The position numbers and the translations under genes were made by a program. The notes below the pieces were generated by a model that worked only from the letters and a program-made list of their open reading frames with translations, made no database searches and had not been told where the DNA came from. From contig NC_047028.1 of assembly GCF_902652985.1 (NCBI RefSeq), positions 12,462,001-12,526,000 on the forward strand: DNA of 64,000 bases, read 5' to 3'. Shown here piece after piece: positions 7,056 through 44,039 of the stretch; position 1 is the first letter of the stretch, and each line of letters opens with the position of its first letter. This stretch comes from Pecten maximus. Taxonomy: Eukaryota.

Positions 7056-8890
7056 AAGTGTATGACATGATTTGTCCTCTGGTACATTAGGACGTTTTGA
7101 GAGTGTATGACGAGATTGGTCCTCTGGTACATTAGGACGTTTGAGAGTGTATGACGAGATTGGTCCTCTGGTACAATAGGACGTTTTGAGAGTGTATGAC
7201 GAGATTGGTCCTCTGGTACAATAGGACGTTTCGAGAGTGTATGACGAGATTGGTCTTCTGGTACATTAGGACGTTTGGAGAGTGTATGACGAGATTGGTC
7301 CCCGGGTAAAGTAGACGTTTTGGGAGTGTATGACGAGATTGGTCCTCTGGTACATTAGGACGTTTGGAGAGTGTATGACGAGATTGGTCCTCTGGTACAA
7401 TAGGACGTTTCGAGAGTGTATGACGAGATTGGTCCTCTGGTACATTAGGACGTTTGGAGAGTGTATGACATGATTCGTCCTCTGGTACATTAGGACGTTT
7501 GGAGAGTGTATGACATGATTGGTCCTCTGGTACAATAGGACGTTTGGAGAGTGTATGACGAGATTGGTCCTCTGGTACATTAGGACGTTTGGAGAGTGTA
7601 TGACATGATTGGTCCCCGGGTAAATTAGACGTTTTGGGAGTGTATGACGAGATTGGTCCTCTGGTACAATAGGACGTTTTGGGAGTGTATGGCATGATTG
7701 GTCCTCTGGTACATTAGGACGTTTGGAGAGTGTGACGAGATTGGTCCTCTGGTACATTAGGACGATTGGAGAGTGTATGACATGATTGGTCTTTCGGTAC
7801 AATAGGACGTTTTGAGAGTGTATGACATGATTGGTCCTCTGGTACATTAGGACGTTTGGAGAGTGTATGACGAGATTGGTCCTCTGGTACATTAGGACGT
7901 TTGGAGAGTGTATGACGAGATTGGTCCTCTGGTACAATAGGACGTTTGGAGAGTGTATGACGAGATTGGTCCTCTGGTATATAGGACGTTTGGGGAGTGT
8001 ATGACGAGATTGGTCCTCTGGTACAATAGGACGTTTGGAGTGTGTATGACGAGATTGGTCCTCTGGTACAATAGGACGTTTGGAGAGTGTATGACGAGAT
8101 TGGTCCTCTGGTACAATAGGACGTTTGGAGAGTGTATGACATGATTGGTCCTCTGGTACAATAGGACGTTTGAGAGTGTATGACGAGATTGGTCCTCTGG
8201 TACAATAGGACGTTTGAGAGTGTATGACGAGATTGGTCCTCTGGTACAATAGGACGTTTGGAGAGTGTATGACGAGATTGGTCCTCTGGTACAATAGGAC
8301 GTTTGGAGAGTGTATGACGAGATTGGTCCTCTGGTACAATAGGACGTTTGGGGAGTGTATGACGAGATTGGTCCTCTGGTACAATAGGACGTTTGGAGAG
8401 TGTACGACGAGATTGGTCCTCTGGTACATTAGGACGTTTGGAGAGTGTATGACATGATTGGTCCTCTGGTACATTAGGACGTTTGGGGAGTGTATGACAT
8501 GATTGGTCATCTGGTACATCAGGACGTTTGGAGAGTGTATGACATGATTGTTCGTCTGGTTCATTAGGACGTTTGAGAGTGTATGACGAGATTGGTCCTC
8601 TGGTACATTAGGACGTTTGGAGAGTGTATGACATGATTGGTCCTCTGGTACATTAGGACGTTTGGAGAGTGTATGACATGATTGGTCCTCTGGTACAATA
8701 GGACGTTTGGAGAGTGTATGACGAGATTGGTCCTCTGGTACATTAGGACGTTTGGAGAGTGTATGACATGATTGGTCCCCGGGTAAATTAGACGTTTTGG
8801 GAGTGTATGACGAGATTGGTCCTCTGGTACATTAGGACGTTTGGAGAGTGTATGACGAGATTGGTCCCCGGGTACATTAGGACGTTTTGA
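7056..8890. repeat. 45-bp minisatellite, ~40 copies
   Basis: Unit GAGTGTATGACGAGATTGGTCCTCTGGTACATTAGGACGTTTGGA. It produces the 15-aa periodic spurious ORFs in the track. Confidence 0.96.
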
Positions 8891-14183: not shown

Positions 14184-15147
14184 TCAGGGACAAATAGTAA
14201 TGTCGTAATTAATCATTTTTGCAGTAAACATATATGCGTAGATGCAGCCCTCATGGAGTTTATACAAGATAACGGAGAGAACAGAGCGGTCGATGTTACA
14301 CCCATCTCCGCCATTTTCACGATGTCCTGTCACCGACAGAGTACCTGCCCTTTTTATCGAAATCGCCACAGGGATGCGCAGAAATCGTTTGTTTTGAAAA
14401 GAAACATTTACGTTTGACTGCGCATTTCATCCATGGTGATATGACTGTCTCCATGACGCCAGTTCGTCGGTTGATGAGCAGCCAATCAGTGTTCAATTCT
14501 CGGGTATATTCGTAAAATATCGGCTCGTCCCGGACACTTTGCGTGACAATGTCCTTTGTGGCTTTAGACTTGAGAAGCTCCCTGCTATCCAGTACAATGA
14601 TCCCGCTTTTAGCAGACCGCGCAAGATCAAACAGGATGTTCAAGCTACCGTCAGAATTAAATCGGAGTGAGGATCCAACCCACATAACGAAATCATACTC
14701 TACAAGCACTAGGTCTAAAATTATTGGTTTCAAAGCGCCTGATTCGATCCGCTGAAGCTGAGCAGGATATTCGAAGAATGGAAATCGACGTATTTCCATG
14801 GCAACATCTTTAGACCAACTATACAATGTATCGTTCTGTGTCTCAGTCAAACCAATGTCATAGAATATCACATAAATGCTAGGATGTTGTCGTGTCAAAT
14901 TCACTAACACAGTCTGTAACATGATCATCGATTGGTCGAAATTATGCGCATGAGCAGCGGAGACAATGACAGGTAGATCTTCGACTTCTTTTACAGCGGG
15001 TATAAGGGGAGGGATGTATTCTTCTTCTGTGAAGCATTTGAGTTTTTCTTTAACTAAGGTCGACATCACAATTAAGAAAAGGACCGATATAACAAAGAGA
15101 CCTAATGTCACCAATCCAATAACTGGTGGAGCACATCGTGTTTCCAT
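14184..15147 (-). CDS. DUF1647-like (GT-A fold-like) type II membrane protein; single coding exon with an apparent frameshift near 14320-14360
   Basis: ATG at 15147 just after a polypyrimidine-CAG acceptor (exon starts 15151). N-terminal TM helix VIGLVTLGLFVISVLFLIVM. Motifs VIVSAA..HNF, IFYDIGL, KPIIL, VMWVGSSLRF and PWMKCA. The expected C-terminal C..D.SVLSVILYKL lies in another frame (14184-14369). Family assignment is from motif recall only. Confidence 0.65.
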
Positions 15148-15409
15148 AATACTGAAAAACAAAATGAAATGGTGATCAAGAATACACAGCGGGTACCATT
15201 ATAGCTCTATGGTCGTCAGGAAATAACATAATTCTAGAAATAAAACTGCTGGACACTTCTCTATGTGACAGTGCTTCATGAACACTAGACTTTTCCCATT
15301 CTTCGTGTACCTTTTCAAGGGTCGTGAAAGTCACTCTTTTGCTTGAGGCAGATTAAAATACGGTTTCGTCTCCAAGTGAAGTATTTAAGGATATATTCAC
15401 AGGTTTTCG

Positions 15410-15750
15410 CGAAGATAAAAGTTTATCCTGGATAATCAAGTTTATCCTGGAGATCAAAGTTGATGCTGGAGATCAAAGATTATCCTGAAGATCAAAATTA
15501 ATGCTGGAGATCACGGTTTTATTGTGAAGATCAGTTTATTCTAAATATCACAGTTGAAGACGAAAGGAGACGAAAGTTTATCCTGAAGATCACACACAGT
15601 TTATCCTGAAGGATCAAAATTGATGCTGAAGATCAAATTTAATCCTGAAGATAAGAGTTTAATGTGAAAATCACAGTTTATAGTGAAGATCAAAGTTTAT
15701 CCTGAAGATAACAGTTTATTCTGAAGGTCATAGTATATCAATCATGAAGG
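15410..15750. repeat. Degenerate ~20-bp tandem repeat
   Basis: Recurring GATCAAAGTTTATCCTGAA-like units. Confidence 0.7.
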
Positions 15751-17270
15751 TCACCCAGTGATCAGATTTCAGCAGACATGCAAAGTTATTATTTTCATTA
15801 AGATTAAATCTGTTTAACCATCAATGACAAGGAGTTATGTGACTGCTCAATAAGCACATGAAGTGACACTTGCGTGGAGTCTTGTAGATACTGACGAAGG
15901 TTTAGCACATTCGAGGAAAATCCAACAACCAACTAATTCCATGCAAGCAGTTCCGGGTCGTCTCTGGTCTGGATCAGCATCACGGAGTATTTGATTTGAC
16001 TTCAAGTATGTTTTACTGAAGTGGATCAAAGGGACTTAAAAGAAGTTCTTACAACTGACTCCTCGATACTCCGGGAGTTACGTATTCACTCTCTGAACAG
16101 GAATGTGCCAAAGTAAAGTTGAAGGTTCAGTCACCGACATCTTGTGGGAAAAATAAAAAGACAACATGTATTTTCAAAGTAAAACATAAAAGAAGTTACT
16201 TTCTCGAGACACACGCATGCACAACATTGCCCTTACGAGAAGTGCCTTTTTTATATTGTATGTATATACAGTATATATATATTTGGATAAAAATCAAACA
16301 TGACATCACACTTGATTCTCATTACTAAGCTAAAATATTTTGATGATATATGTTTTTAAAACTGTAGCGTATCATAATAATTGCACACAGTACTATTTTC
16401 CAGTTTTTATAATTGTCTATTATTGGCAATAGATTGGTATTCATAAAACACCGATCTTATTTGGTCTGTTGAGCTTGAATAAAATGAACACAACAAAACC
16501 AATCACCATTGTGTTGTCTGGTGTGTGGGACAAGGATATCAGACTTGTCGTGTAACATGGCTGTCTAGTGTAATGTATTGATTCGAACCCCCTAATACTA
16601 CCCGATTAACCGTTATACATGTAGCTCCAGGATTATATCATGAAATAATAAAGATTTAATAACCATTATTTTCTTGTATAATGCATGTGCGTCTTTGAAA
16701 TATGTGTACCGTCGATATTCGATCAAAACAACTACTGTTTCACGCGGTAATATTCCCACAGACAGACAGTGAGTTGCCTTGACAACATCCTTGATGTAAA
16801 CAAGTACAGGTACTCACCCGTGCATGACCCCCGCGTGTGTTAATGGAGCCGGGAATATGCAGCTACATTCGATGTATCAGCAGTTCATTTTACCAATCAA
16901 TTCTTCGTCGAGATGACGCCTCTGTCTCAGATATTTCATACAAGGTAACTCAATATATTATTAACTACCGTGGTCTTTATATCATACACAGCAAATAACT
17001 ACAAACTAGTCAGGCTTAATTAGATTATAAGGCCGGGTGGTTATCGAGATGATATATTGGTCTACGATGTATAGATTAAAAAAAAACCGAGGTGCACCTT
17101 CTACAAAAACCGCCTTTATGATTAATAAGTTATATGATATCTTATTTTCTCCTTACTGACATAACGAGAATCGTATGTGGTATTAAAACTAAATAAGAAA
17201 CTTTAAAACATCGCTGTGTAACCTAAGGACAACACAGTCAAAGAGGATACAAGAGAGACCGGGACTTTGG

Positions 17271-17343
17271 TTATCAGGGCTTTGGAAGGAGTGAATGGGA
17301 TCTAACAGAACAGTCCCATTCACTCCCTCCAAAGCCCTGATAA
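17271..17343. repeat. 73-bp near-perfect hairpin
   Basis: 30-bp arms TTATCAGGGCTTTGGAAGGAGTGAATGGGA / TCCCATTCACTCCCTCCAAAGCCCTGATAA, one mismatch, 13-nt loop. Confidence 0.8.
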
Positions 17344-17959
17344 TCTCACATGTATTTTATTTATACGATCTATTCCTCTCAAATTAAACCCATGGGACTT
17401 GTTCCCCCAGTAGCCTGATGTATACACTGTATGGGTTGGCTACAGATCGGGCAGAAACAGGCGGGCGGCTTGTGCATTATTTTTTTTTTCATACGCGTAG
17501 AATGATGTTAATCTGGTAAAATTCGTGGACAAATGAAACCGGTTAAATTTGGTAGTTTCATTGAGTTTGATTTGAGAAGAAATTGAAATATTTGAAGTAA
17601 TAGCCTCTTTAAATCAAAATCATTTCACAATAAAAACGTCATAATAACGCAATGGTTCTCAATCAGAATCATTGCTGCGTTTGATTAATCCGTAGCGCTG
17701 TGTGAATTCCTCGACGTTGATCAAAATAGTGTAACAATCACGCCATGTTATATAGACTACATGTCCGCGCTCAAAGCAAACTTCATTTTATTTATCTTCA
17801 CAAAATTAGATGTACAGAGAAAAATATGTTTACAACAATGTACAAACAAAACAAATTTGATTGCATGTGGAGGACAGATCATGAGAATTTTTTAAACATA
17901 TAAAAATCTCCAAAACTTCTGATTTTTTTTTTTACATTTTTTTAGTGTCCTTTTTTTCT

Positions 17960-18210
17960 GAAAATTTAATAAACTTTGGTAATTCGTATGACAAATTCTG
18001 TTTTTATATTCAATATTTTGCCATCTCCCAGTTACTACTATAAATTTATGATAACAAGTTCTAAATTTACACAATAACCTTCGCCTATTCTCATTTGATA
18101 TTTCTAAATAATTTTCAAAATCACAATTATTTTTATATATTCTATAACAAACAGATTTAGAGGAATTAAAAACTTCACTGCTAAACTTCTTGTAAGAACT
18201 GGTCATCTAA
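17960..18210 (-). mobile_element. LINE ORF2 C-terminal remnant
   Basis: Translation SSKSVCYRIYK...FENYL...LCKFRTCYHKFIVVTGRW..IEYKNRIC resembles the C-terminal region of non-LTR retrotransposon ORF2. Confidence 0.65.
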
Positions 18211-18645
18211 TATTTGTTTTACAGATAGTTTTACAAATTCTAGGTTAATCTCATAAATATACCCCAGGTTAACATGGAGATAATAGGAGATTGCGCCGCC
18301 AAATGTGAATTATAAAATAGAACACATCTATCATTGAGAGGGAATGCTTTCGAACTTTTGGCGACATACTTATGGACTTAACACACCTGTATTTAAACCA
18401 TCTACATATGGTCACCGGTCAACACTAGGTAATAACATCAGTTCTATAACTCTTGTGTCGACTACCCCATAATTCATTGGATTATAATTTCATACATTAT
18501 TCAATTACGTAACTCAAAATGAACTTATGAAATGAGATAATTAATTCACAATACTGCTGTCAATCCTGTTTTACCATGTATTATTGTTATCCATTTGTTA
18601 ATGTTCATAGATAGTGTCTGCACTGTACTTGTTATGAGAATAAAC

Positions 18646-18865
18646 TTTTGGTTTGTTTTTGTTTAACGTCTTATTAACAGCCAGGGTCATTTAAGGACGT
18701 GCCAGGTTTTGGAGGTGGAGGAAAGCCGGAGTACCCGGAGAAAAGCCACCGGCCTACGGTCAGTACCTGGCAACTGCCCCACGTAGGTTTCGAACTCGCA
18801 ACCCAGAGGTGGAGGGCTATTGTTAAAGTGTCGGGACACCTTAACCACTCGGCCACCGCGGCCCC
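18646..18865 (-). mobile_element. tRNA-derived SINE with V-domain, full length
   Basis: A box TGGCCGAGTGG, B box GTTCGAAAC, V-like core and 11-bp TSD TGAGAATAAAC (18635-18645 / 18866-18876). Confidence 0.9.
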
Positions 18866-19479
18866 TGAGAATAAACAAGTGTCATTGTAAACAACAAGGA
18901 GACTCCGATCATGGTTCCATTATATGCCAACGAAACGATGTAAAACTGACAGAACTATATACAGCAGCAGAGTCATCACCTAATTAGTGTGTTTTAATTA
19001 CAGTGTGTATGTATTGGTAAGTTGTGTATTGGCAAAATCAATCTGAGGTAAGTTATGTTTATATTTAAAATACTACCTATCTAGTGGATAGAAGCTCATT
19101 AATTTTTATTTTGAGGTTTGTTGTTTTTTAAACACTGTTATAACGTTTTAGTAAACTTTTTTTGTATGAAATATTCACTAGGTTTTATCTGTTGATGTTT
19201 TTTTTATTAATTCCATTTTTGTAGAGTGTTATTTGTAATAAGATAACAAAGCTGACTTAATTGTACATGTTTTCAACCACTATGTACAACTTTAAAATAA
19301 GGCAAAAAGACCGTAATTGGTTAAACACATTTAATTTCAATTTAATCGAACTATTTCGGATCTTGTAAATAACATTACTCTCTCTCGTAGATTGATCTAA
19401 CAGATCTATGATATATCGGAAGCGTCAGAAATAAAAAACAAATGCATAACTTTGTTTGGGTACACATACAAGTGTTAAC

Positions 19480-19570
19480 TGCGTTCGTTTGATTTACCCT
19501 ATTCCGATAAATTACACGAGTGTACACAAGTAAACATTACGCCCAACGCGGAAGTATTCCACAGGTAAGT
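19480..19570 (+). promoter_or_regulatory. Putative promoter / non-coding exon 1 of serpin copy 1
   Basis: CGTTTGA...TTCCGATAA...GTAAACA (19530-19536)...CGCGGAAGT (19547-19555)...CAG|GTAAGT donor (GT at 19565). The same motif order occurs upstream of copies 2-4. Confidence 0.6.
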
Positions 19571-20589
19571 CAAGTTTTATTGATACAGATAACTGATATA
19601 CAAACCAAGACCATAGCGTCTTTAAATTTGATCAGTATTATATTCTCTGTGCAATATCAAAAGTAGAAGCCCCCGACAAATAGCAAAGAAAGTAAAAAGG
19701 TTGACACTTCAGGATTTACCTGAGATGAACTTTCGTGCATCCAACTGTATGTACTGTAGACGTGTGTTTCGTGTATTGAGAAATTGATGCATGACATGGA
19801 GAATATAACACGTCTTCTGACTAACAACCTCTATGATCGTGTAATGTTTAATGCTTGGCTGCGAGGGAATATCTAAAATATATTATAAAACAGGCGAGCC
19901 TCTGTACAGCTTCCATCTTTTTATTCTTCTTTTCAACTATCTCCCAAAAACGGATTCGGAGAATCTGGTCAGGTATAAAATAATAAAACATGCTGAAGTC
20001 CTACTATGCATCAATCTGTTTAAAATACCATCTTAATACACTGCGTTATGAAATACGATAGTTTGTAAATATGATCTGTATTTTAATCAGATCGTAGATG
20101 CATTGACCAAATTTCTGTGTCCAGTGCCTCTAGCACATCGTAAGACCCTCTAAATCAGCTGGAAAAAAAGGGAAAGAAACCTTTAAATCCGGGCATTTTT
20201 TTTTACACTTTGTGTTTAAAAAAGCATACGAGTATATAGAATACTACACTTGTCATTTTCCTCCTTAACCTTTCAGCAATACCTTAATATATAGTTACAC
20301 GTAGTGTATGTTAGCGGCAATAACATATAAATGAATATACAAGCACATGTAATTCAATAAATATTTTGAAAAAAAAACATACGTTTAAGACGCTCACAAT
20401 TTGTTATTTTGAAACTTATTTCCCCTGGATATATCCCATTGTCAGTCCATGTGAATGGGTTTGCTAAAAATGTAACTACGTGGGTTCTTGCTTAGAATTA
20501 GAATTACAATGCATTTATTGTTGATATACGAAAACATGAACTTTTACACTTAAGCCTTGATGTCAATTTTCTTTAGTTTCATCGGGGTA

Positions 20590-21230
20590 AAATTAATTTT
20601 TCTTTGTTTTCATGGTAAATACTCAAATGTGATTGGTCGAAAAATTCTTTTCATTCTTCTATGAAAGAAATTCCGAGAATGGCGCGAAACATGTGACGTC
20701 ACAATACGACAATTGACGTTGCGTATTGATTTGAGAAAAAGAATCCCATTTAAAACCAGTAAATTGTACATAAAACATGTTTTAAATTAGAAAATCATAT
20801 TCAAAAATGAATTATAAGCGTTGATGTCAAGTATTTTTTAGTTTCATCGGGGTATGAAACCAAAAAAAAAATGACATCAATGCTTAAATGAAAAAAAATT
20901 TGTTTGCAAACTGTATGAATCCGCTTGATTCTTACAGAAGTTTGCAAACAAATTTTTTTCATATCTCTCTGAAACTAAAAAATAATTGACATCAACGCTT
21001 ATAATTAATTTTGAAAATAATTTTCTAATTTAAAACATTTTTTATGTACAATTTTACTGGTTTTATATGGTATTCTTTTTCTTCAAATCAATACGCAACG
21101 TCAATTGTCGTATTGTGACGTCATATTTTTCGCGCCCTTCTCGGATTTTTTTCATAGTGGTATGAAAAAATATCTCAACCAATCAGAAAGCCGCATTCTG
21201 CTTACCCACAACGGAAAATTAATTATATTT
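20590..21230. mobile_element. Long palindromic MITE/foldback element in intron 1 of serpin copy 1
   Basis: ~260-bp inverted arms, e.g. TGACGTCACAATACGACAATTGACGTTGCGTATTGATTTGA (~20694) versus its reverse complement at ~21084-21124. Confidence 0.8.
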
Positions 21231-21408
21231 AAATATAATTTTTGGCAATATATTCACACCTTGGGTTAAATATGGTATATGTGAGTCATAAAATGATGGG
21301 AAATGATTTTGACAAAATCAATCAAATGAAAGTAAATGAGTTATATACATCCTTTCTAAATTTGCTGGTATTTCATTTTTTCAGGAATTGCTGTCCTTTA
21401 ATCTTACC

Positions 21409-22596
21409 ATGGCTTTCCATCAGTCACCCAGAAGCGCCACAGTCTTCAGAGATGATAAACTGCATACAGATTTCCAGACGTCCAATGCGGAGTTTACCTT
21501 GGAGATTTATAAGCGTTTGACTAAAATGTCCACAGACGGAAATTTGTTCTACTCGCCTTTCTCAATCTCCGCCGCCATGTCCATGGTTTATCTTGGTGCC
21601 AGGGAGCAGACGGCAGACCAGATGATTCCCGCGCTTAGTATTCAATCCTTAGGTCAGCGAGTGCATGATGCTTATGAGGATTACTTGAAGGTGGTTTTAG
21701 GTAAAAGCGATAATGTCACACTTCATATTGCCAACAGACTATATCCTAACAGTAAGACGGACATTGTACCATCTTTCATTGAGCTATGTGCTAAGCACTA
21801 CCAAGCTGACACCAAAACAATGGACTATCGACAATTTGAAGCTGCAAGAAAAGAAATTAACGAATGGGTAAGCCAGCAGACAGCAGAGAAAATAAAAGAC
21901 CTTCTTCCTGAGGGATCTCTAAATCCATTAACAATGATGGTATTGGTAAATGCCATCTACTTCAAAGGTGACTGGGAGACACCATTTGACGACAAAGTTA
22001 CTAAAGATATGACTTTCCATAACCTTAACGGTCAACAAAAGACTGTGAAAATGATGATTGAGAAAGCTACAAAATTTCCGTTCAAACAAGATGATGAATT
22101 AAAATGTAAGGTTTTGGAATTGCCCTATAGAGGAAATGACCTCTCAATGGTCATTATTTTGCCAAATGATATAGACGGATTACCTGCCCTTGAAGAGAAA
22201 TTAACCCCTTCCGTAATTAAAGGACTTACGACAAAAATGCCACCTATAAAAGTGGAAGTGTTTCTACCAAAATTTAAACTTAAATCGAGATTTGAGCTTT
22301 CAAAATTGTTCCAGAGCATGGGAATGACAGATCTGTTTGATGGATCCAAAGCCGACCTGACTGGCACAGACGCTTCCAAGATGTCGTATGTGTCCGCCAT
22401 CTTTCACCAAGCTTTTGTAGACGTAAACGAGAAAGGCACCGAAGCAGCTGCAGCAACAGCCGTTGTAATGATGTTTGGAATGGCTCGTCCAACAACGCCA
22501 ATACAGTTCAAGGCCGATCACCCATTCATGTTTGTCATCAAAGACAATCGATCCGACACAATTTTGTTTGTTGGAAGGTATGTCGATGTCGTTTAA
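21409..22596 (+). CDS. Serpin copy 1 (395 aa), predicted intracellular; RCL P2-P1-P1' = Phe-Gly-Met
   Basis: Serpin motifs NLFYSPFSIS, NAIYFKGDW, LPKFKL, hinge EKGTEAAAAT and FKADHPFMF. Acceptor TTTTTTCAG ends at 21384 and the first ATG (ACCATGG) is at 21409. No signal peptide and no KDEL. Confidence 0.95.
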   Translation: MAFHQSPRSATVFRDDKLHTDFQTSNAEFTLEIYKRLTKMSTDGNLFYSPFSISAAMSMVYLGAREQTADQMIPALSIQSLGQRVHDAYEDYLKVVLGKSDNVTLHIANRLYPNSKTDIVPSFIELCAKHYQADTKTMDYRQFEAARKEINEWVSQQTAEKIKDLLPEGSLNPLTMMVLVNAIYFKGDWETPFDDKVTKDMTFHNLNGQQKTVKMMIEKATKFPFKQDDELKCKVLELPYRGNDLSMVIILPNDIDGLPALEEKLTPSVIKGLTTKMPPIKVEVFLPKFKLKSRFELSKLFQSMGMTDLFDGSKADLTGTDASKMSYVSAIFHQAFVDVNEKGTEAAAATAVVMMFGMARPTTPIQFKADHPFMFVIKDNRSDTILFVGRYVDVV

Positions 22597-23859
22597 ACGC
22601 CAGAAAGGGACGAATCACGAAGATAAATATAGAGGACCTTGTATTACCTATCACACACCAGACTTTATGTACTGATATACGTTTAGTGCAATGGAACTTT
22701 CCTGGCAGCTACAGTTGGTTCTGATGTTTTCACTGTATAGTCTTATAAACTATTGTCCACGTCCACTCGTGGTGTAAAATTCGGATACCAAAGTATGTTC
22801 AAATTAACTTTACACTCATTTATTTCTTGTATGTATTTTCTTATAACTTTTTGCCATCTGTTCAAGAAGGATTCTTTTCTGGTGATGTATCTTATTGTCT
22901 TTTTTTTATGTTTAATTGGTAATTGAAGGCGATGTATACCCCGGTATGTGTATACCTGGTCTGCATTGTTAAGGAGTCTAGACAAAAGTAGAAACTAATT
23001 TTATAATTAATTTATCAGCGTGTTCTGATCACAGTGAGCGATGTTGAGGTTTGAATTTCTTGATTCTTGTAATGCTATTTAAAGACTGCAATTTCCGAAC
23101 ACATCATAAGACTTCTTACATATTTCTAAAAAGGTGAGAAAAACATCGTATCTGCTTATTACTTCCCATGTCATAAGTTTTGATGTTCGATGTTCAGAAT
23201 TTATTAAAGTAATAGAACGCATGATAAACGACAGGCTGTGCGCACGATTACATCTGTTTAAAAAAATCCTCTGTCATAAACACAGCCACGCGCGCGTATG
23301 CATATTTTCGGTGTGGGGGGGGGGGGGGGGGTGCAAAAAGTAGGTACGTTGTAAGATGTGTAATACTTTTTCATTTGAAGGAAAATATTAACTCCGATTA
23401 TTTCTTCGAACGTATCAATTTTGTTAACTAGAAAAGATATCAAAATGTATACATACATGATATATATCCATGCTTTGCCTAATTTTGTCATTTTGTTAAA
23501 AATAAATTGCAAATTAACAAATTAACTCATTGGCAAACCAATAATACAGCACCTGGCGATTTTTACTTGTTCATGTCATAGACGTAAGACGTCCGGTCAA
23601 AAAGTGGAAGCAGAAAGCGATATTTAATTGATCAATGCAAATAACGTTATTGTAAGGAAGAGCAATACTTCTGTATGCTGTGTAATAATTGACTGTTGGT
23701 TGTTCAATTCTGTCGGAAATGAAAATAATAAAAATTCAAAATGTCAACATTGACAGCGGTCATCATTTATAAATTATTTTTCTTGTTATCTATATACAAT
23801 GTAATTATATCGGCAATGAATAAGCTTCGCAATCATTGATTGCACATGATAATTATATT

Positions 23860-25690: not shown

Positions 25691-26169
25691 TACCGATATT
25701 TTTATTTCTTAAATTGTGTAAGATATTTATTGTAATAACTAATCCATATTCATCAAACTTATTTACATGGATGGGTGTTTCATTAGTATTTGAAGTAAAA
25801 TAGTACATATTAACCACTCGTCCTATAATCAATAGTACAGATTGACTACTCGTCCTATAATTAATAGTACATATTGACCACCCATCCTATTAAATATACA
25901 GACTGACCACCCATCCTATTAACAGTACAGATTGACCACCCATCGTATTAAGTTTTCGTCATCTGCAGACGCTTATCTGTTCAGTTGTATTTTAAAAATG
26001 GTCAGTTATATTTCTTCAGAAAATGTTATTTTGATTTCTGAAATATGAAATTATCTTATTCATCCGTGTTTTATAAATAATGAAATGAAATGCATATCGT
26101 CTTTTATGTCAGAAATATTCCTTCAAATCCATAAAAAGGGAGATAATGTTTTGTGAAGTTTCGCGCAAA

Positions 26170-26296
26170 AGTTCGCTCCGTTTGTTTGATTTGCTTCATT
26201 CCGTTAATTTATATATGTATACATGTAAACAAACGAGTCCACGCGTTCAATATCGCGGAAGTATATTGTGTGTATGTTAATCAAAGTAGGTAAGTA
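26170..26296 (+). promoter_or_regulatory. Putative promoter / non-coding exon 1 of serpin copy 2
   Basis: TGTAAACA (26224-26231), CGCGGAAGT (26254-26262) and donor AG|GTAAGT (GT at 26290). Confidence 0.6.
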
Positions 26297-26699: not shown

Positions 26700-27570
26700 T
26701 TATCAGAGAGGGGAATGAAAGGGATGGGAATCATGAGATTTGACAGGGAGGGAATCTAAGGGGTGGGAATCATGAGATTTGACAGGGAGGGGAATGTAGG
26801 GGGTGGGAATCATGAGATTTGACAGGGAGGGGAATGTAAGGGGTAGGAAATCATGAGATTTGACAGGGAGGAGAATGTAAGGGGTGGGAATCATGAGATT
26901 TGACAGGTAGGAGAATGTAAGAGAAGTGGTAGAAATCATGAGATTTGACAGGTAGGTGAATCCAAGGGGTGGGAATCATGAGATTTGACAGGGAGGAGAA
27001 TGCAAGGGGTGGGAATCATGAGATTTGACAGGGAGGTGAATGTAAGGGGTCGGAATCATGAGATTTGACAGGGAGGAGAATGTAAGGGGTGGGAATCATG
27101 AGATTTGACAGGGAGGAGAATGTAAGGGGTGGAATCATGAGATTTGACATGAAGGAGAGTGCATGGGGTCGGAATCATGAGATTTGACAGGGAGGGGAAT
27201 GTAAGGGAAGGGGTCGAAATCATGATATTTGACAGGGAGGGGAATGTAAGGGTAGGGAATTATGAGATTTGACATGGAGGTGAATTCAAGGGATGGGAAT
27301 CATGACATTTGACAGGAAGGAGAGTGCATGGGGTCGGAATGATGGTATTTGACAGGGAGGGGAATGCAAGGGGGCGGAATCATGGGATTTGACAGGTAGG
27401 TGAATTCAAGGGATGGGAATCATGAGATTTGACAGGAAGGAGAGTGCATGGGGTGGGAATCATGATATTTGACAGGGAGGGGAATGCAAGGGGTCGGAAT
27501 CATGAGATTTGACATGGAGGGGAATTGAAGAGGAGTTGGGGAAACATGAGATTTGACGGGGAGGGGAATG
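26700..27570. repeat. G-rich 40-bp minisatellite in intron 1 of serpin copy 2
   Basis: Unit GGGTGGGAATCATGAGATTTGACAGGGAGGGGAATGTAAG, ~21 copies. Confidence 0.93.
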
Positions 27571-28541
27571 TAAAGTGTGGGAAATACGGAAGTAACAAGG
27601 AGGGTAGTTATATAGCATAGAGGAGGATCAAGGGCTTTTACAAGATATGGAACGCAAGTGTAGGGAAATATTGGATTTAACACTGAGGAGAATTTCAATG
27701 TGTGAAAAGGGGATTAAGGAGGGAGAGGAATCACGTGATTAAACAGAGAGAATTGTGAGGGATGGAAATTACTTGATTTAACAGGAAGATGAATGCAAGG
27801 GATAGGTATTTTACAAGGAAGTATTTCCAGACTCGAGCACCACTTAACTATTTTATGGCCCTCATTTTACTCCTTGACAATCTAATCTTATCTAAGAGAC
27901 AAAGTAGTAGTAATAAAACCTGTTTAAAGACACTGTTTTGCGGCCGTTAAAAAGATTGACTAATAAATAATTACCGAATATTTTATTTGTACATTTAAAG
28001 GTATTGCTTCAAACAAAAGTTATTGTTGACCTATGATTAATATAATATCATTTAGGAACTTTTTAACATTTAACATACAGAAAAACAGCGAGAGGAATAT
28101 ATATTTAAGAAAAATGCTAAAAAAAAAGATTGATACATTATTAGTCGCATTTATATCCGCTTTCAAATTCTATCTTCATTGCTGTCATACACTCTATCCT
28201 ACACAATGCTTGTCATCCTATGACATATTCTATATTGTTACGATACCCACTGTATATTCCTTTCCTACGGTACAATGTATATTCCAACGATACAGTGTAT
28301 ATTCCTATCATACTGATGCATTGTATAGTATCCTTCATTGTTTATACATAGCATAAACTGTACGTTATATTATTGTCAATTCTTATATATATCCTACATT
28401 GTAGATAACTTTCCAACATAACATATGCCTATCCTACATCGTACATTGTATATACATATAGCATTGTATATTCCTATTTACATCCTCCATTGTACATACC
28501 TATCCTACATTGTATATTCCTGTTTTGATTTCTTTAGGGAT

Positions 28542-29783
28542 ATGAAACACCAATGGTTGTCCCTAGTCCTTATCATGGCTTTCCTTCAGTCACCCAGCAG
28601 CGCCAAAGTTTTCAGGGATGATAAACTGCATACAGATTTCCAAACGTCCAATGCGGACTTCACCTTGGAGATTTATAAGCGTTTGACTAAAATGTCCACA
28701 GACGGAAATTTGTTCTTCTCGCCTTTCTCAATCTCCGCCGCCATGTCCATGGTTTATCTTGGTGCCAGGGAGCAGACGGCAGACCAGATGATTCCCGCGC
28801 TTCGTATTCAATCCTTAGGTCAGCGAGTGCACGATGCTTATGAGGATTACTTGAAGGTGGTTTTAGATAAAAACGATAACGTCACACTTCAGATTGCCAA
28901 CAGACTGTATCCTGACAGTAAGACGGACATTGTACCATCTTTCATTGAGCTATGTGCTAAGCACTACCAAGCTGACACCAAAACAATGGACTATGGACAA
29001 TTTGAAACTGCAAGAAAAGAAATTAACGAATGGGTAAGCCAACAGACAGCAGAGAAAATAAAAGACCTTCTTCCTGAGGGATCTCTCAATTCATTAACAA
29101 TGATGGTATTGGTAAACGCTATCTACTTCAAAGGTGACTGGGAAACAAAATTTGATGAAAAAGCTACCAGGGATATGACCTTTCATAACCTCAAAGGTCA
29201 ACAAAAGACTGTGAAAATGATGTTTCAGAAAGCTACACAATTTCCGCTTAAATACGATGGTGAATTAAAATGTAAGGTTTTGGAATTGCCTTACAAAGGA
29301 AACAGCCTCTCAATGGTCATTATTTTGCCTGAGGATAGAGACGGATTGCCTGCTCTTGAAGAGAAATTAAGCTCGTCCGTAATTAAAGGACTTACGACAG
29401 AAATGTCACCTATAGAAGTGGAAGTGTTTCTCCCAAAATTTAAACTTAAATCGGGATTTGAGCTTTCAAAAATGTTCAAAAGCATGGGAATGACAGATCT
29501 GTTTGATGGATACAAAGCCGACTTGACTGGCATAGACGCCGCCAAGATGTCGCATGTGTCCGCCATCTTTCACCAAGCTTTTGTGGACGTAAACGAGGAA
29601 GGCACCGAAGCAGCTGCAGCCACAGCCGTTACAATGGAGACATTTTCATCTCCAGGTCCACCATTACAATTCAAGGCCGATCACCCATTCATGTTCGTTA
29701 TCAAAGACAATCGGTCCGACACAATTTTGTTTGTTGGAAGATTTGCTGATGTTGTTCAGGCACAAGAAAAAGATGAATTATAG
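28542..29783 (+). CDS. Serpin copy 2 (413 aa), signal peptide + KDEL; RCL P1-P1' = Phe-Ser
   Basis: Acceptor TTTAG ends at 28537. N-terminus MKHQWLSLVLIMAFLQSPSSA. Hinge and loop EEGTEAAAATAVTMETF|SSPGPP. Ends QEKDEL*. Confidence 0.96.
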   Translation: MKHQWLSLVLIMAFLQSPSSAKVFRDDKLHTDFQTSNADFTLEIYKRLTKMSTDGNLFFSPFSISAAMSMVYLGAREQTADQMIPALRIQSLGQRVHDAYEDYLKVVLDKNDNVTLQIANRLYPDSKTDIVPSFIELCAKHYQADTKTMDYGQFETARKEINEWVSQQTAEKIKDLLPEGSLNSLTMMVLVNAIYFKGDWETKFDEKATRDMTFHNLKGQQKTVKMMFQKATQFPLKYDGELKCKVLELPYKGNSLSMVIILPEDRDGLPALEEKLSSSVIKGLTTEMSPIEVEVFLPKFKLKSGFELSKMFKSMGMTDLFDGYKADLTGIDAAKMSHVSAIFHQAFVDVNEEGTEAAAATAVTMETFSSPGPPLQFKADHPFMFVIKDNRSDTILFVGRFADVVQAQEKDEL

Positions 29784-33299: not shown

Positions 33300-33945
33300 A
33301 ATGGGAATTACAGGGAGGGTAATGGAAGGGTGGAGATTACGGGACATAACAGGGAGGGTAATGGAAGAGTGAAGATTACGGGATATAACAGGGAGGGTAA
33401 TGGAAGGGTGGAGATTACAGGATATAACAGGGGGTAATGGAAGGGTGGAGATTACGGGATATAACAGGGAGGGTAATGGAAGGGTGAAGATTACGGGATA
33501 TAACAGGGAGGGTAATGGAAGAGTGAAGATTACGGGATATAACAGGGAGGGTAATGGAAGGGTGAAGATTACGGGATATAACAGGGAGGGTAATGGAAGG
33601 GTGGAGATTACGGGATATAACAGGGAGGGTAATGGAAGGGTGGAGATTACGGGATATAACAGGGAGGGTAATGGAAGGGTGGAGATTACAGGATATAACA
33701 GGGGGTAATGGAAAGGTAGTATTACAGGATATAACAGGGAGGGTAACGGAAAGGTGGATATTACGGGATATAACAGGGAGGGTAATGGTAGAGTGGAGAT
33801 TACAAGATATAACAGGGAGGGTAATGGAAGGGTGGATATTACAGGATATAACAGGGAAGGTAATGGAATGTTGGAGATCACGGGATATAACAGGGAGGGT
33901 ATTGGAGGGGTTAATGGAAGGGAGTTGGTTACGGGATATAACAGG
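33300..33945. repeat. G-rich 39-bp minisatellite (unit A copy)
   Basis: Unit GGAGATTACGGGATATAACAGGGAGGGTAATGGAAGGGT, ~16 copies. Confidence 0.93.
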
Positions 33946-34394
33946 ATACAACATTGGAATCGATTATAAAGCGCTTTTTAACCCGTTTCTGGTTGTTATA
34001 ACACTATATTTTATAACAACAAGAAACGGGTGTTTTTTTTAAAGCACTTTATAATCGATTCCAATGTTGTATCGGTGCATAAATAGACAAGAAATGATGT
34101 TACAAATTAAAATTAGACAATTCCATTATAACTTTAGTTCCTGATCCCAAGTACCTGTGAATGAAAGTGCATTAAAGTCTGAGGCGGTACAAAACTAGAT
34201 CGCCAATGTTAACAGTGAATGTATTCAAACGCAGGCAAGAAAGTGATTCGTCTCTCAGAACAGAAGCACGCGACCCAAAATCTTAACATTCAACGGGAAA
34301 TTCAGATCGAAGTGAAAAAGTAAATATATCGTTGTAATTGTCAGAGAGAATAATCCATCAATAAGAATAATAAATGCCATGTTTCGTAAACTTT

Positions 34395-34551
34395 CGTTCC
34401 GTTTGTTTGAGACGATTTATTCCGATAATTTGCGTGCGTATATGTAAACAAACGTGTCCACACCTTCACTAGGCCGTATCGCGGAAGTTTGCTGTGCATA
34501 GTTTCTTATCTACATAGCGCACGTATACATGTTTATTAACACAGGTAAGTA
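34395..34551 (+). promoter_or_regulatory. Putative promoter / non-coding exon 1 of serpin copy 3
   Basis: TTCCGATAA, TGTAAACA (34443-34450), CGCGGAAGT (34480-34488) and donor CAG|GTAAGT (GT at 34545). Confidence 0.6.
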
Positions 34552-36189
34552 ACTGATATATCTACATTCTTTTCGTAAGGTGGTTGTTCTGATATTCTGG
34601 ATATAACCCCCAATTTATATATGTAGATCATGATCGAGTAGTTCTTTAATATCGATAAAAATGATAACTGATCATCATGATAACATTGATCTATAATCGA
34701 TAAATTTAACAAGAGTCGGTCCCGAAGGGGGCGAGAGTTACCATGCTTACACATTGTACATATGAAGTTAATGACTTTTGTCCGTTAATTAACTGGTGTG
34801 TCGTATACAAGAAGTACCCTACTGTTAGGTTTCGCCAAAACGAGTATAGTATATATATACAAATGTAGTTATAATTGTTTAGTATCGCATCTCGTCTGCT
34901 GAAAGACCCGTTCAATAAATAAATAGTGTCACATGACTCGGGATTGGAAGGGTAGGAATTACGGGATTTAACAGGGAATGTCGTGATAAATATACCTTAA
35001 GCCAAGTTGACGTGATAAGATTGGTCATAAAACCTGCTAAACTGACACAGTTTTATGGCCATAACAACAGGTAGGCCTACAAATAATTACCGAATATTTC
35101 ATTTCCACAGTTACATATATCAGGGATCAGAATCATGATATTTAACAGGGAGGGAAATTGAAGAGGAGTTGGGGAACATGAGTTTGACGGGGAGGGGAAC
35201 GTAAAGTGTGGGAAAGACGGACGTAACAAGGAGGGTAGTGATATAGCATAGAGGAGGATCAATGGCTTTTACAAGATATGGAAAGCAATCGTAGGGAAAT
35301 ATTGGATTTAACATTGAGGAGAATTCCAATGTGTGAAAAGGGGATTAAGGAGGGAGAGGGATCACGTGATTAAACAAAGAGAAAATTCCGTGGGAGGGGA
35401 TTACTTGTTTTAACAGGAAGATGGACGCAAGAGATCTAGATGGATTACTGGTTATAACAAGAAGAGGGATGTAAGGGATGGGAGTTACGGTATTTTACAA
35501 GGAAGTTTTTCCAGACTCAAGCTCAACTTAACTATTTTAAGGGACTCATTTTACGCCTTGACAATCAAATCTTTATTTTTAAGAATTTAAGAGACATAGT
35601 AGTAGTCGTAAAACATGTTTATAGAAACTGTTTTGTGGCAGTTAAAATGATTGGCTAACAACTAATTACTGAATATTTTATTTGTACATTTACAGGTATT
35701 ATTTCAAAGATAAGTTGATGTTAACCTATAATTAATATAAAGATATGATGTAGAAACTTTTGAACATTTCACATACAGAAAAACAGGATCTGCTAAAAGA
35801 GATTTATTCATCATTCTCCGAATTTATATCTGCTTTCAAATTATACATTTATTGCTTTCATACGCCTTATCCTACATAATATTTGCCTGTTATATATTGT
35901 TACGATACTCATTGTATATTCCAACGATACATTGTATATTCCTGTCATTCTGATACATTGTATAGTATCCTTCATTGTTTATACATATCCTAAATTGTAC
36001 ATTTTATTATTGTAAATTCTTATATATATCCTACATTGTAGATAACTTTCCAACATTGCATACGCATATCCTACATCGTACATTGCATATACATATATAA
36101 CATTGTATATTCCTATTCCACATTATTTATGCTCACTTCACATTGTATATGCCCATCCTCATTCCTGTTGTTTTGATTTCTTTAGGGAT

Positions 36190-37431
36190 ATGAAACACCA
36201 ATGGCTGTCCCTAGTCATTATTATGGCTTTCCTTCAATCACCAAGCAGAGCTAAAGTTTTCAGAGATGATAAACTGCATACAGATTTCCAGACGTCCAAT
36301 GCGGACTTCACCTTGGAGATGTATAAGCGTTTGACTAAAATGTCCACAGACGGGAATTTGTTCTACTCGCCTTTCTCCATCTCTGCCGCCATGTCCATGG
36401 TTTATCTTGGTGCCAGGGAGCAGACGGCAGCCCAGATGATTCCCGCTCTTAGTATTCAATCCTTAGGTCAGCGAGTGCACGATGGTTATGAGGATTACTT
36501 GAAGGTGGTTTTAGGTAAAAGCGATAACGTCACACTTCAGATTGCCAACAGACTGTATCCTGACAGCAAGACGGACGTTGTACCATCTTTCATTGAGCTA
36601 TGTGCTAAGTACTACCAAGCCGACACCAAAACAATAGACTATCGACAATTTGAAGCTGCAAGAAAAGAAATCAACGAATGGGTGAGTCATCAGACAGCAG
36701 AGAAAATAAAAGACCTTCTTCCTGAGGGATCTTTAACTCCATTAACAGTGATGGTATTGGTAAACGCTATCTACTTCAAAGGTGACTGGGAGACAAAATT
36801 TGATGACAAAGTCACCAAGGATATGACCTTTCATAACCTCAAAGGTCAACAAAAGACTGTGAAAATGATGTTTCAGAAAGCTACAAAATTTCCGCTTAAA
36901 TACGATGATCAATTAAGATGTACGGTTTTGGAATTGCCTTACAAAGCGAACAGCCTCTCAATGGTCATTATTTTGCCAGATGATATAGACGGATTACCTG
37001 CCCTTGAAGAGAAATTAACCCCTTCTGTAATTAAAGGACTTACGACAAAAATGCCACCTGTAAACGTGGAAGTGTTTCTTCCAAAATTCAAACTTAAATC
37101 GAGTTTTGAGCTTTCAAAATTGTTCCAGAGCATGGGAATGACATATCTGTTTCATGGATCCAAAGCCGACCTGACTGGCATAGACACTTCCAATACGTCA
37201 TATGTGTCCTTCATCTTTCACCAAGCTTTTGTAGACGTAAACGAGGAAGGCACCGAAGCAGCTGCAGCCACAGCCGTTATAATTGTGGCATGTTCATCGC
37301 GAGGGCTACCATTACAATTCAAGGCCGATCACCCATTCATGTTCGTTATCAAAGACAATCGGTCCGACACAATTTTGTTTGTTGGAAGATTTGCTGATGT
37401 TGTTCAGGCACAAGAAAAAGATGAATTATAG
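36190..37431 (+). CDS. Serpin copy 3 (413 aa), signal peptide + KDEL; RCL P1-P1' = Cys-Ser
   Basis: Acceptor TTTAG ends at 36185. N-terminus MKHQWLSLVIIMAFLQSPSRA. Hinge and loop EEGTEAAAATAVIIVAC|SSRGLP. Ends QEKDEL*. Confidence 0.96.
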   Translation: MKHQWLSLVIIMAFLQSPSRAKVFRDDKLHTDFQTSNADFTLEMYKRLTKMSTDGNLFYSPFSISAAMSMVYLGAREQTAAQMIPALSIQSLGQRVHDGYEDYLKVVLGKSDNVTLQIANRLYPDSKTDVVPSFIELCAKYYQADTKTIDYRQFEAARKEINEWVSHQTAEKIKDLLPEGSLTPLTVMVLVNAIYFKGDWETKFDDKVTKDMTFHNLKGQQKTVKMMFQKATKFPLKYDDQLRCTVLELPYKANSLSMVIILPDDIDGLPALEEKLTPSVIKGLTTKMPPVNVEVFLPKFKLKSSFELSKLFQSMGMTYLFHGSKADLTGIDTSNTSYVSFIFHQAFVDVNEEGTEAAAATAVIIVACSSRGLPLQFKADHPFMFVIKDNRSDTILFVGRFADVVQAQEKDEL

Positions 37432-41399: not shown

Positions 41400-43358
41400 A
41401 TGGGAATTACGGGATATAACAGGGAGTGTGATGGAAGGATGACATTACGGAATATAACAGGGAGGGTAATGGAAGGGATGATATTACAGAATATAACAGG
41501 GAGGGTAATGGAAAGGTGGAAATTGCGGGATATAACAGGGAGGATAATGGAAGGCTGGAGATTACGGGATATAACAGGGAGGGTAATGGAAGGGTGGATA
41601 TTACGGAATATAACAGGGAGGGTAATGGAAGGGTGGAGATTACGGGATATAACAGGGAGGATAATGGAATGATGGAGATCACGGGATATAACAGAGAGGG
41701 TAATGGAAGGCTGGAGTTACGGGATATAACAGGGAGGGTAACGGAAGGGTGGATATTACGGGATATAGCAGGGAGGGTAATGAAAGAGTGGAGATTACAG
41801 GATATAACATGGATGATAATGGAAGGGTGGAGATTACAGGATATAACATGGAGGATAATGGAAGGGTGGAGATTACAGGATATAACATGGAGGATAATGG
41901 AAGGGTGGAGATTACAGGATATAACATGGAGGATAATGGAAGGGTGGAGATTACGGGATATAATAGGGAGGGTAATGGAAGGGTGGATATTTCGGGATAT
42001 AACAGGGAGGCTAATGGAAGAGTGGAGATTACGGGATATAACATGGATGATAATGGAAGGGTGGAGATTACGGAATATAACAGGAAGGGTAATGGAAGGG
42101 TGGAGATTACGGGATATAACAGGGAGGATAATGGAAGGGTGGAGATTACGGGATATAACGGGGGGGGGGGGGGGGGGGGTAACGGAAGGGTGGGGATTAC
42201 GGGATATAACAGGGAGGGTAATGGAAGGGTGGAGATTACGGGATATAACAGGGAGGGTAATGGAAGGGTGGAGATTACGGGATATAACAGGGAGGGTAAT
42301 GGAAGGGTGGAGATTACGGGATATAACAGGGAGGGTAATGGAAGAGTGGAGATTACGGGATATAACAGGGAGGGTAATGGAAGGGTGGAGATTACGGGAT
42401 ATAACAGGGAGGGTAATGGAAGGGTGGAGATTACGGGATATAATAGGGAGGGTAATGAAAGGGTGGAGATTACGGGATATAATAGGGAGGGTAATGGAAG
42501 GGTGGATATTTCGGGATATAACAGGGAGGCTAATGGAAGAGTGGAGATTACGGGATATAACATGGATGATAATGGAAGGGTGGAGATTACGGAATATAAC
42601 AGGAAGGGTAATGGAAGGGTGGAGATTACGGGATATAACAGGGAGGATAATGGAAGGGTGGAGATTACGGGATATAACGGGGGGGGGGGGGGGGGGGGGG
42701 GGGTAACGGAAGGGTGGGGATTACGGGATATAACAGGGAGGGTAATGGAAGAGTGGAGATTACGGGATATAACAGGGAGGGTAATGGAAGGGTGGAGATT
42801 ACGGGATATAATAGGGAGGGTAATGAAAGGGTGGAGATTACGGGATATAATAGGGAGGGTAATGGAAGGGTGGATATTTCGGGATATAACAGGGAGGCTA
42901 ATGGAAGAGTGGAGATTACGGGATATAACATGGATGATAATGGAAGGGTGGAGATTACGGAATATAACAGGAAGGGTAATGGAAGGGTGGAGATTACGGG
43001 ATATAACAGGGAGGATAATGGAAGGGTGGAGATTACGGGATATAACGGGGGGGGGGGGGGGGGGGGGGGTAACGGAAGGGTGGGGATTACGGGATATAAC
43101 AGGGAGGGTAATGGAAGGGTGGAGATTACGGGATATAACAGGGAGGGTAATGGAAGGGTGGAGATTACGGGATATAACAGGGAGGGTAATGGAAGGGTGG
43201 AGATTACGGGATATAACAGGGAGGGTAATGGAAGAGTGGAGATTACGGGATATAACAGGGAGGGTAATGGAAGGGTGGAGATTACGGGATATAACAGGGA
43301 GGGTAATGGAAGGGTGGAGATTACGGGATATAACAGGGAGGGTAATGGAAGGGTGGAG
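41400..43358. repeat. G-rich 39-bp minisatellite (unit B copy), ~50 copies with poly-G tracts
   Basis: Same unit as 33300-33945. Poly-G runs at ~42159-42179, ~42679-42703 and ~43046-43069. Confidence 0.95.
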
Positions 43359-43561
43359 AACAGCTAGGCCTACTGCGCTACGTACATGTAGGTCATGAGC
43401 TCGGTGCTATCGGGAGTGTCAGTGTTTTGTCAGATCCTGTTTTCTAAACTGTCTGCATTATACTGGCATCCTCCTTATCAGCACATAAAACGGCTCTTCT
43501 ACTTGTGTTTAAATACTTTATAACAATGTTACACAACTCACAAAACGAAAGCACAAGTATA

Positions 43562-43722
43562 TTCTTGTCTATTTATGCACCGATACAACATTGGAATCGA
43601 TTATAAAGCGCTTTTTAACCCGTTTCTGGTTGTTATAACTCTCTATTTTATAACAACCAGTTTTTTTTAAACGCGCTTTATAATCGATTCCAATGTTGTA
43701 TCGGTGCATAAATAGACAAGAA
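43562..43722. mobile_element. Palindromic MITE-like element (truncated paralogous copy at ~33945-34093)
   Basis: TTCTTGTCTATTTATGCACCGATACAACATTGGAATCGATTATAAAGCGC ... GCGCTTTATAATCGATTCCAATGTTGTATCGGTGCATAAATAGACAAGAA. Confidence 0.75.
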
Positions 43723-44039
43723 ATGATGTTACAAATTAAAATTAGACAATTCCATTATATCTTTAGTTCCTGATCCCAAGTACCTGTGAATGAAAGTGCA
43801 TTAAAGTCTGAGGCGGTACAAAACTAGATCGCCAATGTAAACAGTGAATGTATTCAAACGCAGGCAAGAAAGTGATTCGTCTCTCAGAACAGAAGCACGC
43901 GACCCAAAATCTTAACATTCAACGGGAAATGAAGTAATCTGAGTTTACTAGTTTCAGAGCGAAGTGAAAAAGTAAATATATCGTATTAAATGTCAGAAAG
44001 AATAATCCATCAATAAGAATAATAAATGCCATGTTTCGT

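Follow-up and report, generated by a model that had tools for sequence, protein, structure and literature searches.

We analysed a stretch of 64,000 nucleotides of the Pecten maximus genome (contig NC_047028.1, positions 12,462,001 to 12,526,000 of the forward strand; scaffold C14), here called the window, and in particular the first of the four tandem serpin genes that it carries on the plus strand. The entire coding sequence of each gene lies in a single exon (Table 1). The proteins of copies 2 to 4 begin with MK(H/Q)Q(W/R)LSL, continue into a hydrophobic core and a cleavage-type site SxA↓K, and end with (Q/E)AQ(E/G)KDEL. These features resemble those of the Spn-1 type of secretory-pathway serpin (Branchiostoma Spn-1, sea-urchin Spu-Spn-1; neuroserpin ancestor; Kumar and Ragg 2008, PMC2556349). 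Copy 1 lacks both ends. Its exact 395-residue protein is already present in the protein collection (P0001), with 87-89% identity to copies 4 and 3 (P0002, P0003), and bears the automatic name leukocyte elastase inhibitor-like, which hides its origin among KDEL serpins and the loss of its signals. A six-frame search of the whole genome (918,306,378 bp, 3,983 scaffolds) found no further close copy of the cluster serpins, the next-nearest serpin having 36% identity and lying on a different scaffold. A preliminary description of the locus had proposed that copy 1 was moved from the endoplasmic reticulum (ER) to the cytosol and that remnants of both targeting signals can still be read.

Table 1. 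Features of the serpin cluster, in positions of the window (CDS, coding sequence; UTR, untranslated region; uORF, upstream open reading frame, split between exon 1 and the coding exon).
Feature	Position	Strand	Remarks
Copy 1, putative promoter-proximal block and 5'-UTR exon 1	19469-19564	+	from conservation; sole upstream stretch alignable to copies 2-4
Copy 1, putative intron	19565-21384	+	donor CAG↓GTAAGT to acceptor ttttttcag↓G
Copy 1, fossil signal-peptide sequence, now 5' UTR of the coding exon	21385-21408	+	13-bp deletion right after base 21385
Copy 1, CDS	21409-22596	+	395 codons plus TAA; start in cttaccATGg
Copy 1, hinge and reactive-site loop	22435-22536	+	hinge EKGTEAAAAT; loop VVMMFGMARPTTP vs VVMMKRSLPRPP of the conserved copy
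Copy 1, loop	22462-22503		FGMARPTTP
Copy 1, fossil C-terminal spacer and KDEL codons, now 3' UTR	22597-22620	+	T-P-E-R-D-E-S-R; 14/24 identity to copies 2 and 3
Copy 2, putative uORF	26274-26289 and 28538-28545		MLIKVGI
Copy 2, gene	28542-29783	+	413 codons; signal peptide and KDEL; loop VTMETFSSPGPP
Copy 2, loop	29628-29666		METFSSPGP
Copy 3, putative uORF	34529-34544 and 36186-36193		MFINTGI
Copy 3, gene	36190-37431	+	413 codons; signal peptide and KDEL; loop VIIVACSSRGLP
Copy 3, loop	37276-37314		IVACSSRGL
Copy 4, putative uORF	44167-44182 and 46124-46131		MFINTGV
Copy 4, gene	46128-47369	+	413 codons; signal peptide and KDEL; conserved loop VVMMKR↓SLPRPP
Copy 4, loop	47214-47252		MMKRSLPRP

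After the acceptor AG at 21383-21384, copy 1 reads GAATTG, an 18-nucleotide remnant and the ATG at 21409. Alignment to copies 2 to 4 leaves a clean gap of 13 bases in copy 1 straight after the acceptor AG↓G, and the 13 additional bases of the other copies include their ATG. The 5' structure given in the preliminary description, in which the first ATG is deleted and the rest of the signal sequence has become 5' UTR, was thus reproduced. Over the 23 nucleotides preceding the internal Met shared by all copies, copy 1 is identical to copies 2, 3 and 4 at 15, 14 and 17 positions, respectively. The remnant translates to ELLSFNLT, as compared with (W/R)LSL(V/I)L(I/T) in copies 2 to 4, and matches the codons of their hydrophobic h-region. 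Signal peptides were called from hydropathy windows and the -3/-1 rule, judged by eye. The best 9-residue hydropathy is 1.43 for the fossil ELLSFNLT and 2.3-2.9 for the signal peptides of copies 2 to 4. The N-terminus that copy 1 now encodes (MAFHQSPRSA) has no hydrophobic core and reaches only -0.34. With its start ATG deleted, copy 1 does not have the signal peptide of an ER-resident serpin of the Spn-1 type. The change of MAFLQ to MAFHQ noted earlier did occur in copy 1, Leu being the outgroup state.

Upstream of copy 1, positions 19469-19536 match positions 26166-26231 of copy 2 (72% over 68 nucleotides, E 8e-7, sensitive blastn); copies 3 and 4 match less strongly. The counterpart of this block sits about 2 kb upstream of each of copies 2 to 4. 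Common to the copies are the boxes CGTT.GTTTGA, ATTCCG.TAA, a GTAAACA-like box and CGCGGAAGT, followed in every copy by AG↓GTAAGT. In copy 1 this is the donor at 19565, which has the same spacing to the CGCGGAAGT box as in copies 2 to 4. Based on conservation and splice consensus, the block probably comprises a promoter-proximal region and an untranslated exon 1 that would be spliced to the acceptor at 21384/21385. Start codons were read across this putative junction. There is no ATG in any frame in positions 19500-19564, and the first ATG beyond the junction is the one at 21409, in the optimal context ACCATGG. Both donors considered in the preliminary description (19048 and 19565) are good GTAAGT sites, and we agree with it that neither is preceded by a Met in an open phase-0 frame. 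An upstream coding exon that restores a signal peptide in phase 0, which it had named as the observation that would overturn relocalisation, was not found; the homologous exon 1 is without ATG and no exon restores the signal peptide. A retrocopy origin of copy 1 is ruled out because the homologous exon 1, the intron and the acceptor have all been retained.

The putative intron of copy 1 contains an inverted repeat (20630-20859 vs 20957-21185, arms of about 230 nucleotides, 89% over 232 nucleotides) that looks like a miniature inverted-repeat transposable element or a foldback element. If exon 1 is spliced as proposed, copies 2 to 4 each have a 7-codon uORF whose TGA overlaps the main start (ATGA), and the shorter exon 1 of copy 1 is without one. 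The main AUG of copy 4, with T at -3 and A at +4, lies in a weak context and is followed by the internal Met in ACCATGG as the next AUG. The uORF and the weak AUG of copy 4 could allow some signal-less product to be made from the ER-type genes.

At the 3' end, the TAA at 22594-22596 of copy 1 stands in place of a Gln or Glu codon, eight codons ahead of the old stop. The preliminary description had aligned the DNA after this TAA codon for codon with A-Q-E-K-D-E-L-stop of copies 2 and 3, and the alignment holds without a gap: 14 of the 24 nucleotides are identical to copies 2 and 3 and 13 to copy 4 (binomial P about 0.001). Later ungapped blocks of 24 nucleotides give only 5-10 identities, and the homology ends at the old stop codon. 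The protein of copy 1 ends in ...GRYVDVV and has no KDEL-type retrieval signal; the remnant beyond the stop reads RDES.

The direction of these changes was taken from outgroup proteins only. The orthologues of Argopecten irradians (P0004, P0006) and Mizuhopecten yessoensis (P0005, P0007) have an MK...hydrophobic N-terminus and an RDEL or KDEL end. KDEL-type ends are also found in distant bivalves, Haliotis, a hemichordate, a sea cucumber and amphioxus Spn-1, and the combination of a signal peptide with a K/R/N-DEL-type end is present in the Argopecten and Mizuhopecten orthologues, in more distant bivalves and in amphioxus Spn-1. Since the scallop orthologues, distant bivalves and amphioxus bear both signals, copy 1 has lost them and the other copies have not gained them. 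The comparison of bivalve orthologues that the preliminary description had called for, carried out on proteins, confirmed loss as the direction, although the P. maximus genome alone does not reveal which of the two losses came first. Maximum-likelihood analysis groups the four window copies in one clade (support 99/98) nested among signal-bearing scallop proteins, which places copy 1 within the KDEL-serpin lineage of the Spn-1 type. In molluscs, the family of copies 2 to 4 appears to correspond to the Spn-1 serpin of amphioxus and sea urchin.

The serpin body of copy 1 is complete. Its match to Pfam Serpin (PF00079, E 3e-123) covers profile positions 2-369 of 370, and the AlphaFold2 model has a mean pLDDT of 89.5 and a pTM of 0.89, with disorder limited to residues 1-8 and the reactive loop. 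Residues 347-361, in that loop, are the sole internal stretch of low pLDDT. The hinge EKGTEAAAAT fits the inhibitory consensus, as quoted in PMC2770083, at 10 of 10 positions. The reactive loops are hypervariable across the four copies; omega in the loop is 1.27-1.68 in the three pairs among copies 1 to 3 and 0.18-0.52 in the pairs with copy 4. Copy 4 is the only one of the four to retain the loop conserved in scallops, VVMMKR↓SLP, which Argopecten, Mizuhopecten and Ylistrum also have and which amphioxus Spn-1 shares as MMKR↓S. The loop of copy 1 has many substitutions and one extra in-frame codon, the sole indel in the body of its open reading frame (ORF). It does not have the dibasic K/R-R at P2-P1, reading MMFGMA instead of MMKRSL, and its FGM aligns to the FCM (Phe-Cys-Met) reactive centre of leukocyte elastase inhibitor. 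The best sequence match in the PDB is likewise human leukocyte elastase inhibitor (4ga7, E 5e-85). Copy 1 shares both N-glycosylation sequons (NVT, NRS) and both Cys residues with its sisters in alignments judged by eye, so that these are uninformative as a signature of compartment.

Copy 1 carries two lesions, both of them losses, in a gene under purifying selection, and its 395-codon ORF is intact, as had been stated before. In pairwise comparison with its sisters, dS is 0.19-0.25 and omega 0.23-0.37. The changes unique to copy 1 comprise 22 synonymous and 27 non-synonymous ones, giving an omega of about 0.33 (P=1.7e-4 against neutrality). Copies 2 and 3, which are of the ER type, have a whole-gene omega of about 0.9-1.0 on their terminal branches. 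With outgroup proteins as polariser, the derived unique residues number 16 in copy 1, 11 in copy 2, 19 in copy 3 and 2 in copy 4. Three of the 16 in copy 1 fall within its first 11 residues, the former c-region of the signal (Fisher P=0.007). Of 98 serpin columns with high conservation, copy 1 deviates at only 2, against a median of 3 per row. This pattern supports the view that copy 1 is probably not a decaying copy.

The history of copy 1 is more complicated than the preliminary description suggested. Homology of copy 1 to its sisters in blastn is limited to 21386-22593, its intron and 3' UTR being unalignable, whereas copies 2 to 4 share long flanks. Within the exon, copy 1 is nearest copy 2 over codons ~40-180 and nearest copy 3 over codons ~262-340, with a dS of 0.08 in both tracts. 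Codons 180-262 and the 3' end are distant from all sisters (dS about 0.4, omega about 0.2) and represent unconverted sequence. Informative sites along the exon are clustered (P=0.0025). The unalignable flanks, the patchy divergence of the exon and the clustered sites indicate that copy 1 is a paralogue of long standing, older than its 91% identity suggests, and that sequence exchange with the neighbouring copies continues. The claim that the signals were lost in copy 1 therefore stands, but copy 1 is not a recent, simple derivative, being a conversion mosaic whose unconverted parts and flanks indicate an early split. A tree of the segment only (110 columns) did not resolve the relationships. 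Conversion has never reinstated either targeting signal. The fossil tail differs at 10 of 24 positions (Jukes-Cantor distance 0.61), a divergence improbable if it had been neutral for half the lineage or less (P 2e-4 or less), which indicates that the loss of the tail is probably old. For a loss of that age, the probability that the 182 unconverted codons remained free of stops under neutrality would be about 1%, which argues against a pseudogene.

What, then, is the most probable fate of copy 1? We propose, with a probability of roughly 60%, that copy 1 is a live paralogue of the ER-resident KDEL serpins that has lost both targeting ends and whose product is a cytosolic or nuclear inhibitor. 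Its relocalisation we infer with good support; its transcription, start site, location and target protease are predicted from sequence. The 13-bp deletion beside the acceptor took the ancestral start codon, so the first AUG of an mRNA made of exon 1 and the coding exon would be that of the conserved Met within the former signal peptide (21409, ACCAUGG). Without an h-region, the product would not be recognised by the signal recognition particle; as it has no hydrophobic core, it would be expected to stay in the cytosol or nucleus. The nonsense codon cut off the eight-residue spacer plus KDEL, and because KDEL is irrelevant outside the ER, the tail would have been free to decay. Since the serpin body, the hinge and the flexible loop are intact, copy 1 would still be expected to act as a suicide-substrate protease inhibitor. 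In its loop, FGM has taken the place of the dibasic KR↓S, a site suited to proprotein convertases, so that its target probably differs. The MMFGMA loop hints at a chymotrypsin-like, elastase-like or cysteine-protease target. Several points weigh against this proposal. About 60% of the copy 1 ORF has recently been overwritten from copies 2 and 3 by gene conversion, and conversion can make a dead copy look intact; the age argument rests on a clock of 24 nucleotides. The assignment of P1 in the new loop is uncertain, and a protein adapted to the ER may fold or function poorly in the cytosol.

Relocalisation of copy 1 need not have been an innovation. The preliminary description spoke of neofunctionalisation, and subfunctionalisation of a gene that was ancestrally dual, with and without signal peptide, fits about as well. 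In a broader version that we hold only tentatively, the molluscan serpin of the Spn-1 type was ancestrally dual-targeted, through alternative 5' exons or through starts at the conserved Met near the mature N-terminus, and its jobs were repeatedly split between duplicates across bivalve lineages. Hints of dual targeting come from Haliotis, whose RefSeq isoforms differ solely in the presence or absence of a signal-peptide exon (alternative 5' exons) and all end in KTEL; from heterodont protein models, which have KDEL and no signal peptide; and from the uORF and weak first AUG of copy 4. If such an ancestor existed, copy 1 would be specialised for the cytosol through subfunctionalisation, and its case would be one of three or more convergent events. 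The two others would be seen in protein models. Mizuhopecten P0008 (a protein model of 392 residues) begins at the same internal Met (MASSSAK), and its stop lies two codons past that of copy 1. Sinanodonta woodiana P0012, also a protein model, begins at the Met just past the signal peptide of its counterpart in Potamilus, an orthologue, and terminates nine residues short of NDEL. P0008 has 63-65% identity to all four copies and in the unconverted segment is no closer to copy 1 (60% vs 59%). An old loss shared by orthologues was rejected on these grounds, P0008 being equidistant, with a later stop, and the genome having no other close copy. Its loss looks independent since it is equidistant from the four copies and has no closer relative anywhere; the double losses of P0008 and P0012 are, judging from their sequences, probably independent of that in copy 1. 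If these parallels are real, relocalisation would be repeated and predictable, by the single route of a start at the internal Met and a stop before KDEL.

Somewhat less probable, and in our view unlikely, is that copy 1 is non-functional or dying, that its frame has been kept open by gene conversion from functional neighbours, and that the two lesions are ordinary disabling ones. The clear mosaic described above, with its tracts of low dS to copies 2 and 3, is what such a history would leave. However, the unconverted parts, at a dS of about 0.4, have an omega of about 0.2 and contain no stop or frameshift, and the only indel is the in-frame codon of the loop. The boxes of the promoter and exon 1, the donor, the acceptor and the optimal Kozak context have all been kept, as have the conserved serpin residues, and conversion restored neither signal.

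More doubtful still is a copy 1 that remains secretory, either through an unrecognised upstream exon or through a non-AUG start (TTG at 21388 or CTG at 21391), and is secreted for want of KDEL. No stop interrupts the frame between the acceptor and the ATG, the remnant LLSFNLTMAF retains mild hydrophobicity (1.43) and Haliotis places its signal peptide on alternative 5' exons. In scallops, however, the signal peptide sits in the main exon, and the remnant, whose core includes Asn, Ser and Thr, is without a charged n-region. Neither exon 1 nor the donor at 19048 offers an in-frame Met. In the 6 kb upstream (15200-21384), just three candidates run from an ATG through a hydrophobic stretch to a phase-0 donor, and all three have weak donors. 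The reverse polarity, in which an intracellular ancestor resembling clade B gave rise to copies 2 to 4 by gain of signal peptide and KDEL, would agree with the database names, with the best PDB matches being clade-B serpins and with flanking DNA that puts copy 1 as outgroup of the four copies, but is in practice refuted by the Argopecten, Mizuhopecten, unionid, oyster and amphioxus relatives, which bear both signals and an MMKR↓S or KR↓S loop, and by the nesting of copy 1 in a P. maximus clade that itself lies inside the signal-bearing scallop proteins.

Comparison with known systems places copy 1 further. Amphioxus Spn-1 is an ER serpin that inhibits proprotein convertases with the loop NMMKR↓S (PMC2556349). 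Copies 2 to 4 and the scallop orthologues likewise bear a signal peptide and KDEL or RDEL, the MMKR↓S of copy 4 has P4-P1' of the amphioxus loop, and the scallop serpin core is intronless like the sea-urchin gene. Copy 1 differs in having no signal peptide, no dibasic P2-P1 and no KDEL. The genomic setting differs as well. PDCD10 and Spn-1 are tightly linked (head-to-head) in deuterostomes, a linkage not kept in P. maximus, where the sole genome match to the PDCD10 C-domain lies on the same scaffold at C14:24318134-24321274, 11.8 Mb from the serpin cluster. In Drosophila Spn42Da (Spn4), the furin-directed isoform carries an ER retention signal (PMC2556349), and forms with and without signal arise through alternative exons (PMC2770083). 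Spn42Da achieves this with alternative 5' and 3' exons of one gene, whereas the scallop relies on distinct genes in tandem, copy 1 having been fixed in one state by its deletion and its stop codon. SERPINB1, the leukocyte elastase inhibitor and best solved-structure match, resembles copy 1 in having neither signal peptide nor C-terminal extension. Copy 1 is nonetheless probably not its orthologue, being secondarily signal-less within the KDEL-serpin clade, and in its AlphaFold2 model helix A is preceded by about 15 residues left over from the old signal region. The identity of copy 1 to SERPINB proteins (42-45%) is similar to that to many metazoan and even bacterial serpins. Its resemblance to clade B appears to be one of architecture, the nearest kin by sequence being KDEL serpins.

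Signal-less serpins are common, and duplicates that change compartment have precedent: relocalisation of duplicate genes by loss of an N-terminal targeting signal, followed by retention, is established (PMC2397506, PMC2817416, PMC3879971). Copy 1 has lost both the entry signal and the retention signal, and both are still legible as UTR beside unaltered sisters. The literature searched contained no paper on KDEL serpins of bivalves or on serpins of P. maximus. The reading of copy 1, the bivalve branch of the KDEL-serpin lineage and the possible recurrence of the double loss would be new. The cluster sets scallops, and bivalves generally, in the history of the KDEL serpin of proprotein-convertase type, known from amphioxus, sea urchin and Drosophila. 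Four near-identical neighbours that differ mainly in targeting signals and reactive loop also make a clean natural experiment on the co-evolution of compartment and target.

Elsewhere in the window, the minus strand carries a 281-codon ORF (14317-15162) that matches DUF1647 (E 6e-7) and is probably a neighbouring gene; it is separated from exon 1 of copy 1, further downstream, by about 4.3 kb. A 432-codon ORF at 7266-8564, also on the minus strand, consists of tandem 15-residue repeats (NVLMYQRTNHVIHSP-like) and is probably a translated satellite, not a gene. Long minisatellite arrays with a period of 39 bp lie upstream of copies 3 and 4 (33303-33911 and 41403-43359) and give rise to spurious long ORFs of the GYNREGNGRVEIT type. 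The region upstream of copy 3 matches that of copy 4 at 92% in its first part (33945-35120 vs 43582-44736) and that of copy 2 at 78-90% in its second (35122-36117 vs 27489-28478), and this switch within 33945-36117 is consistent with a chimeric copy 3.

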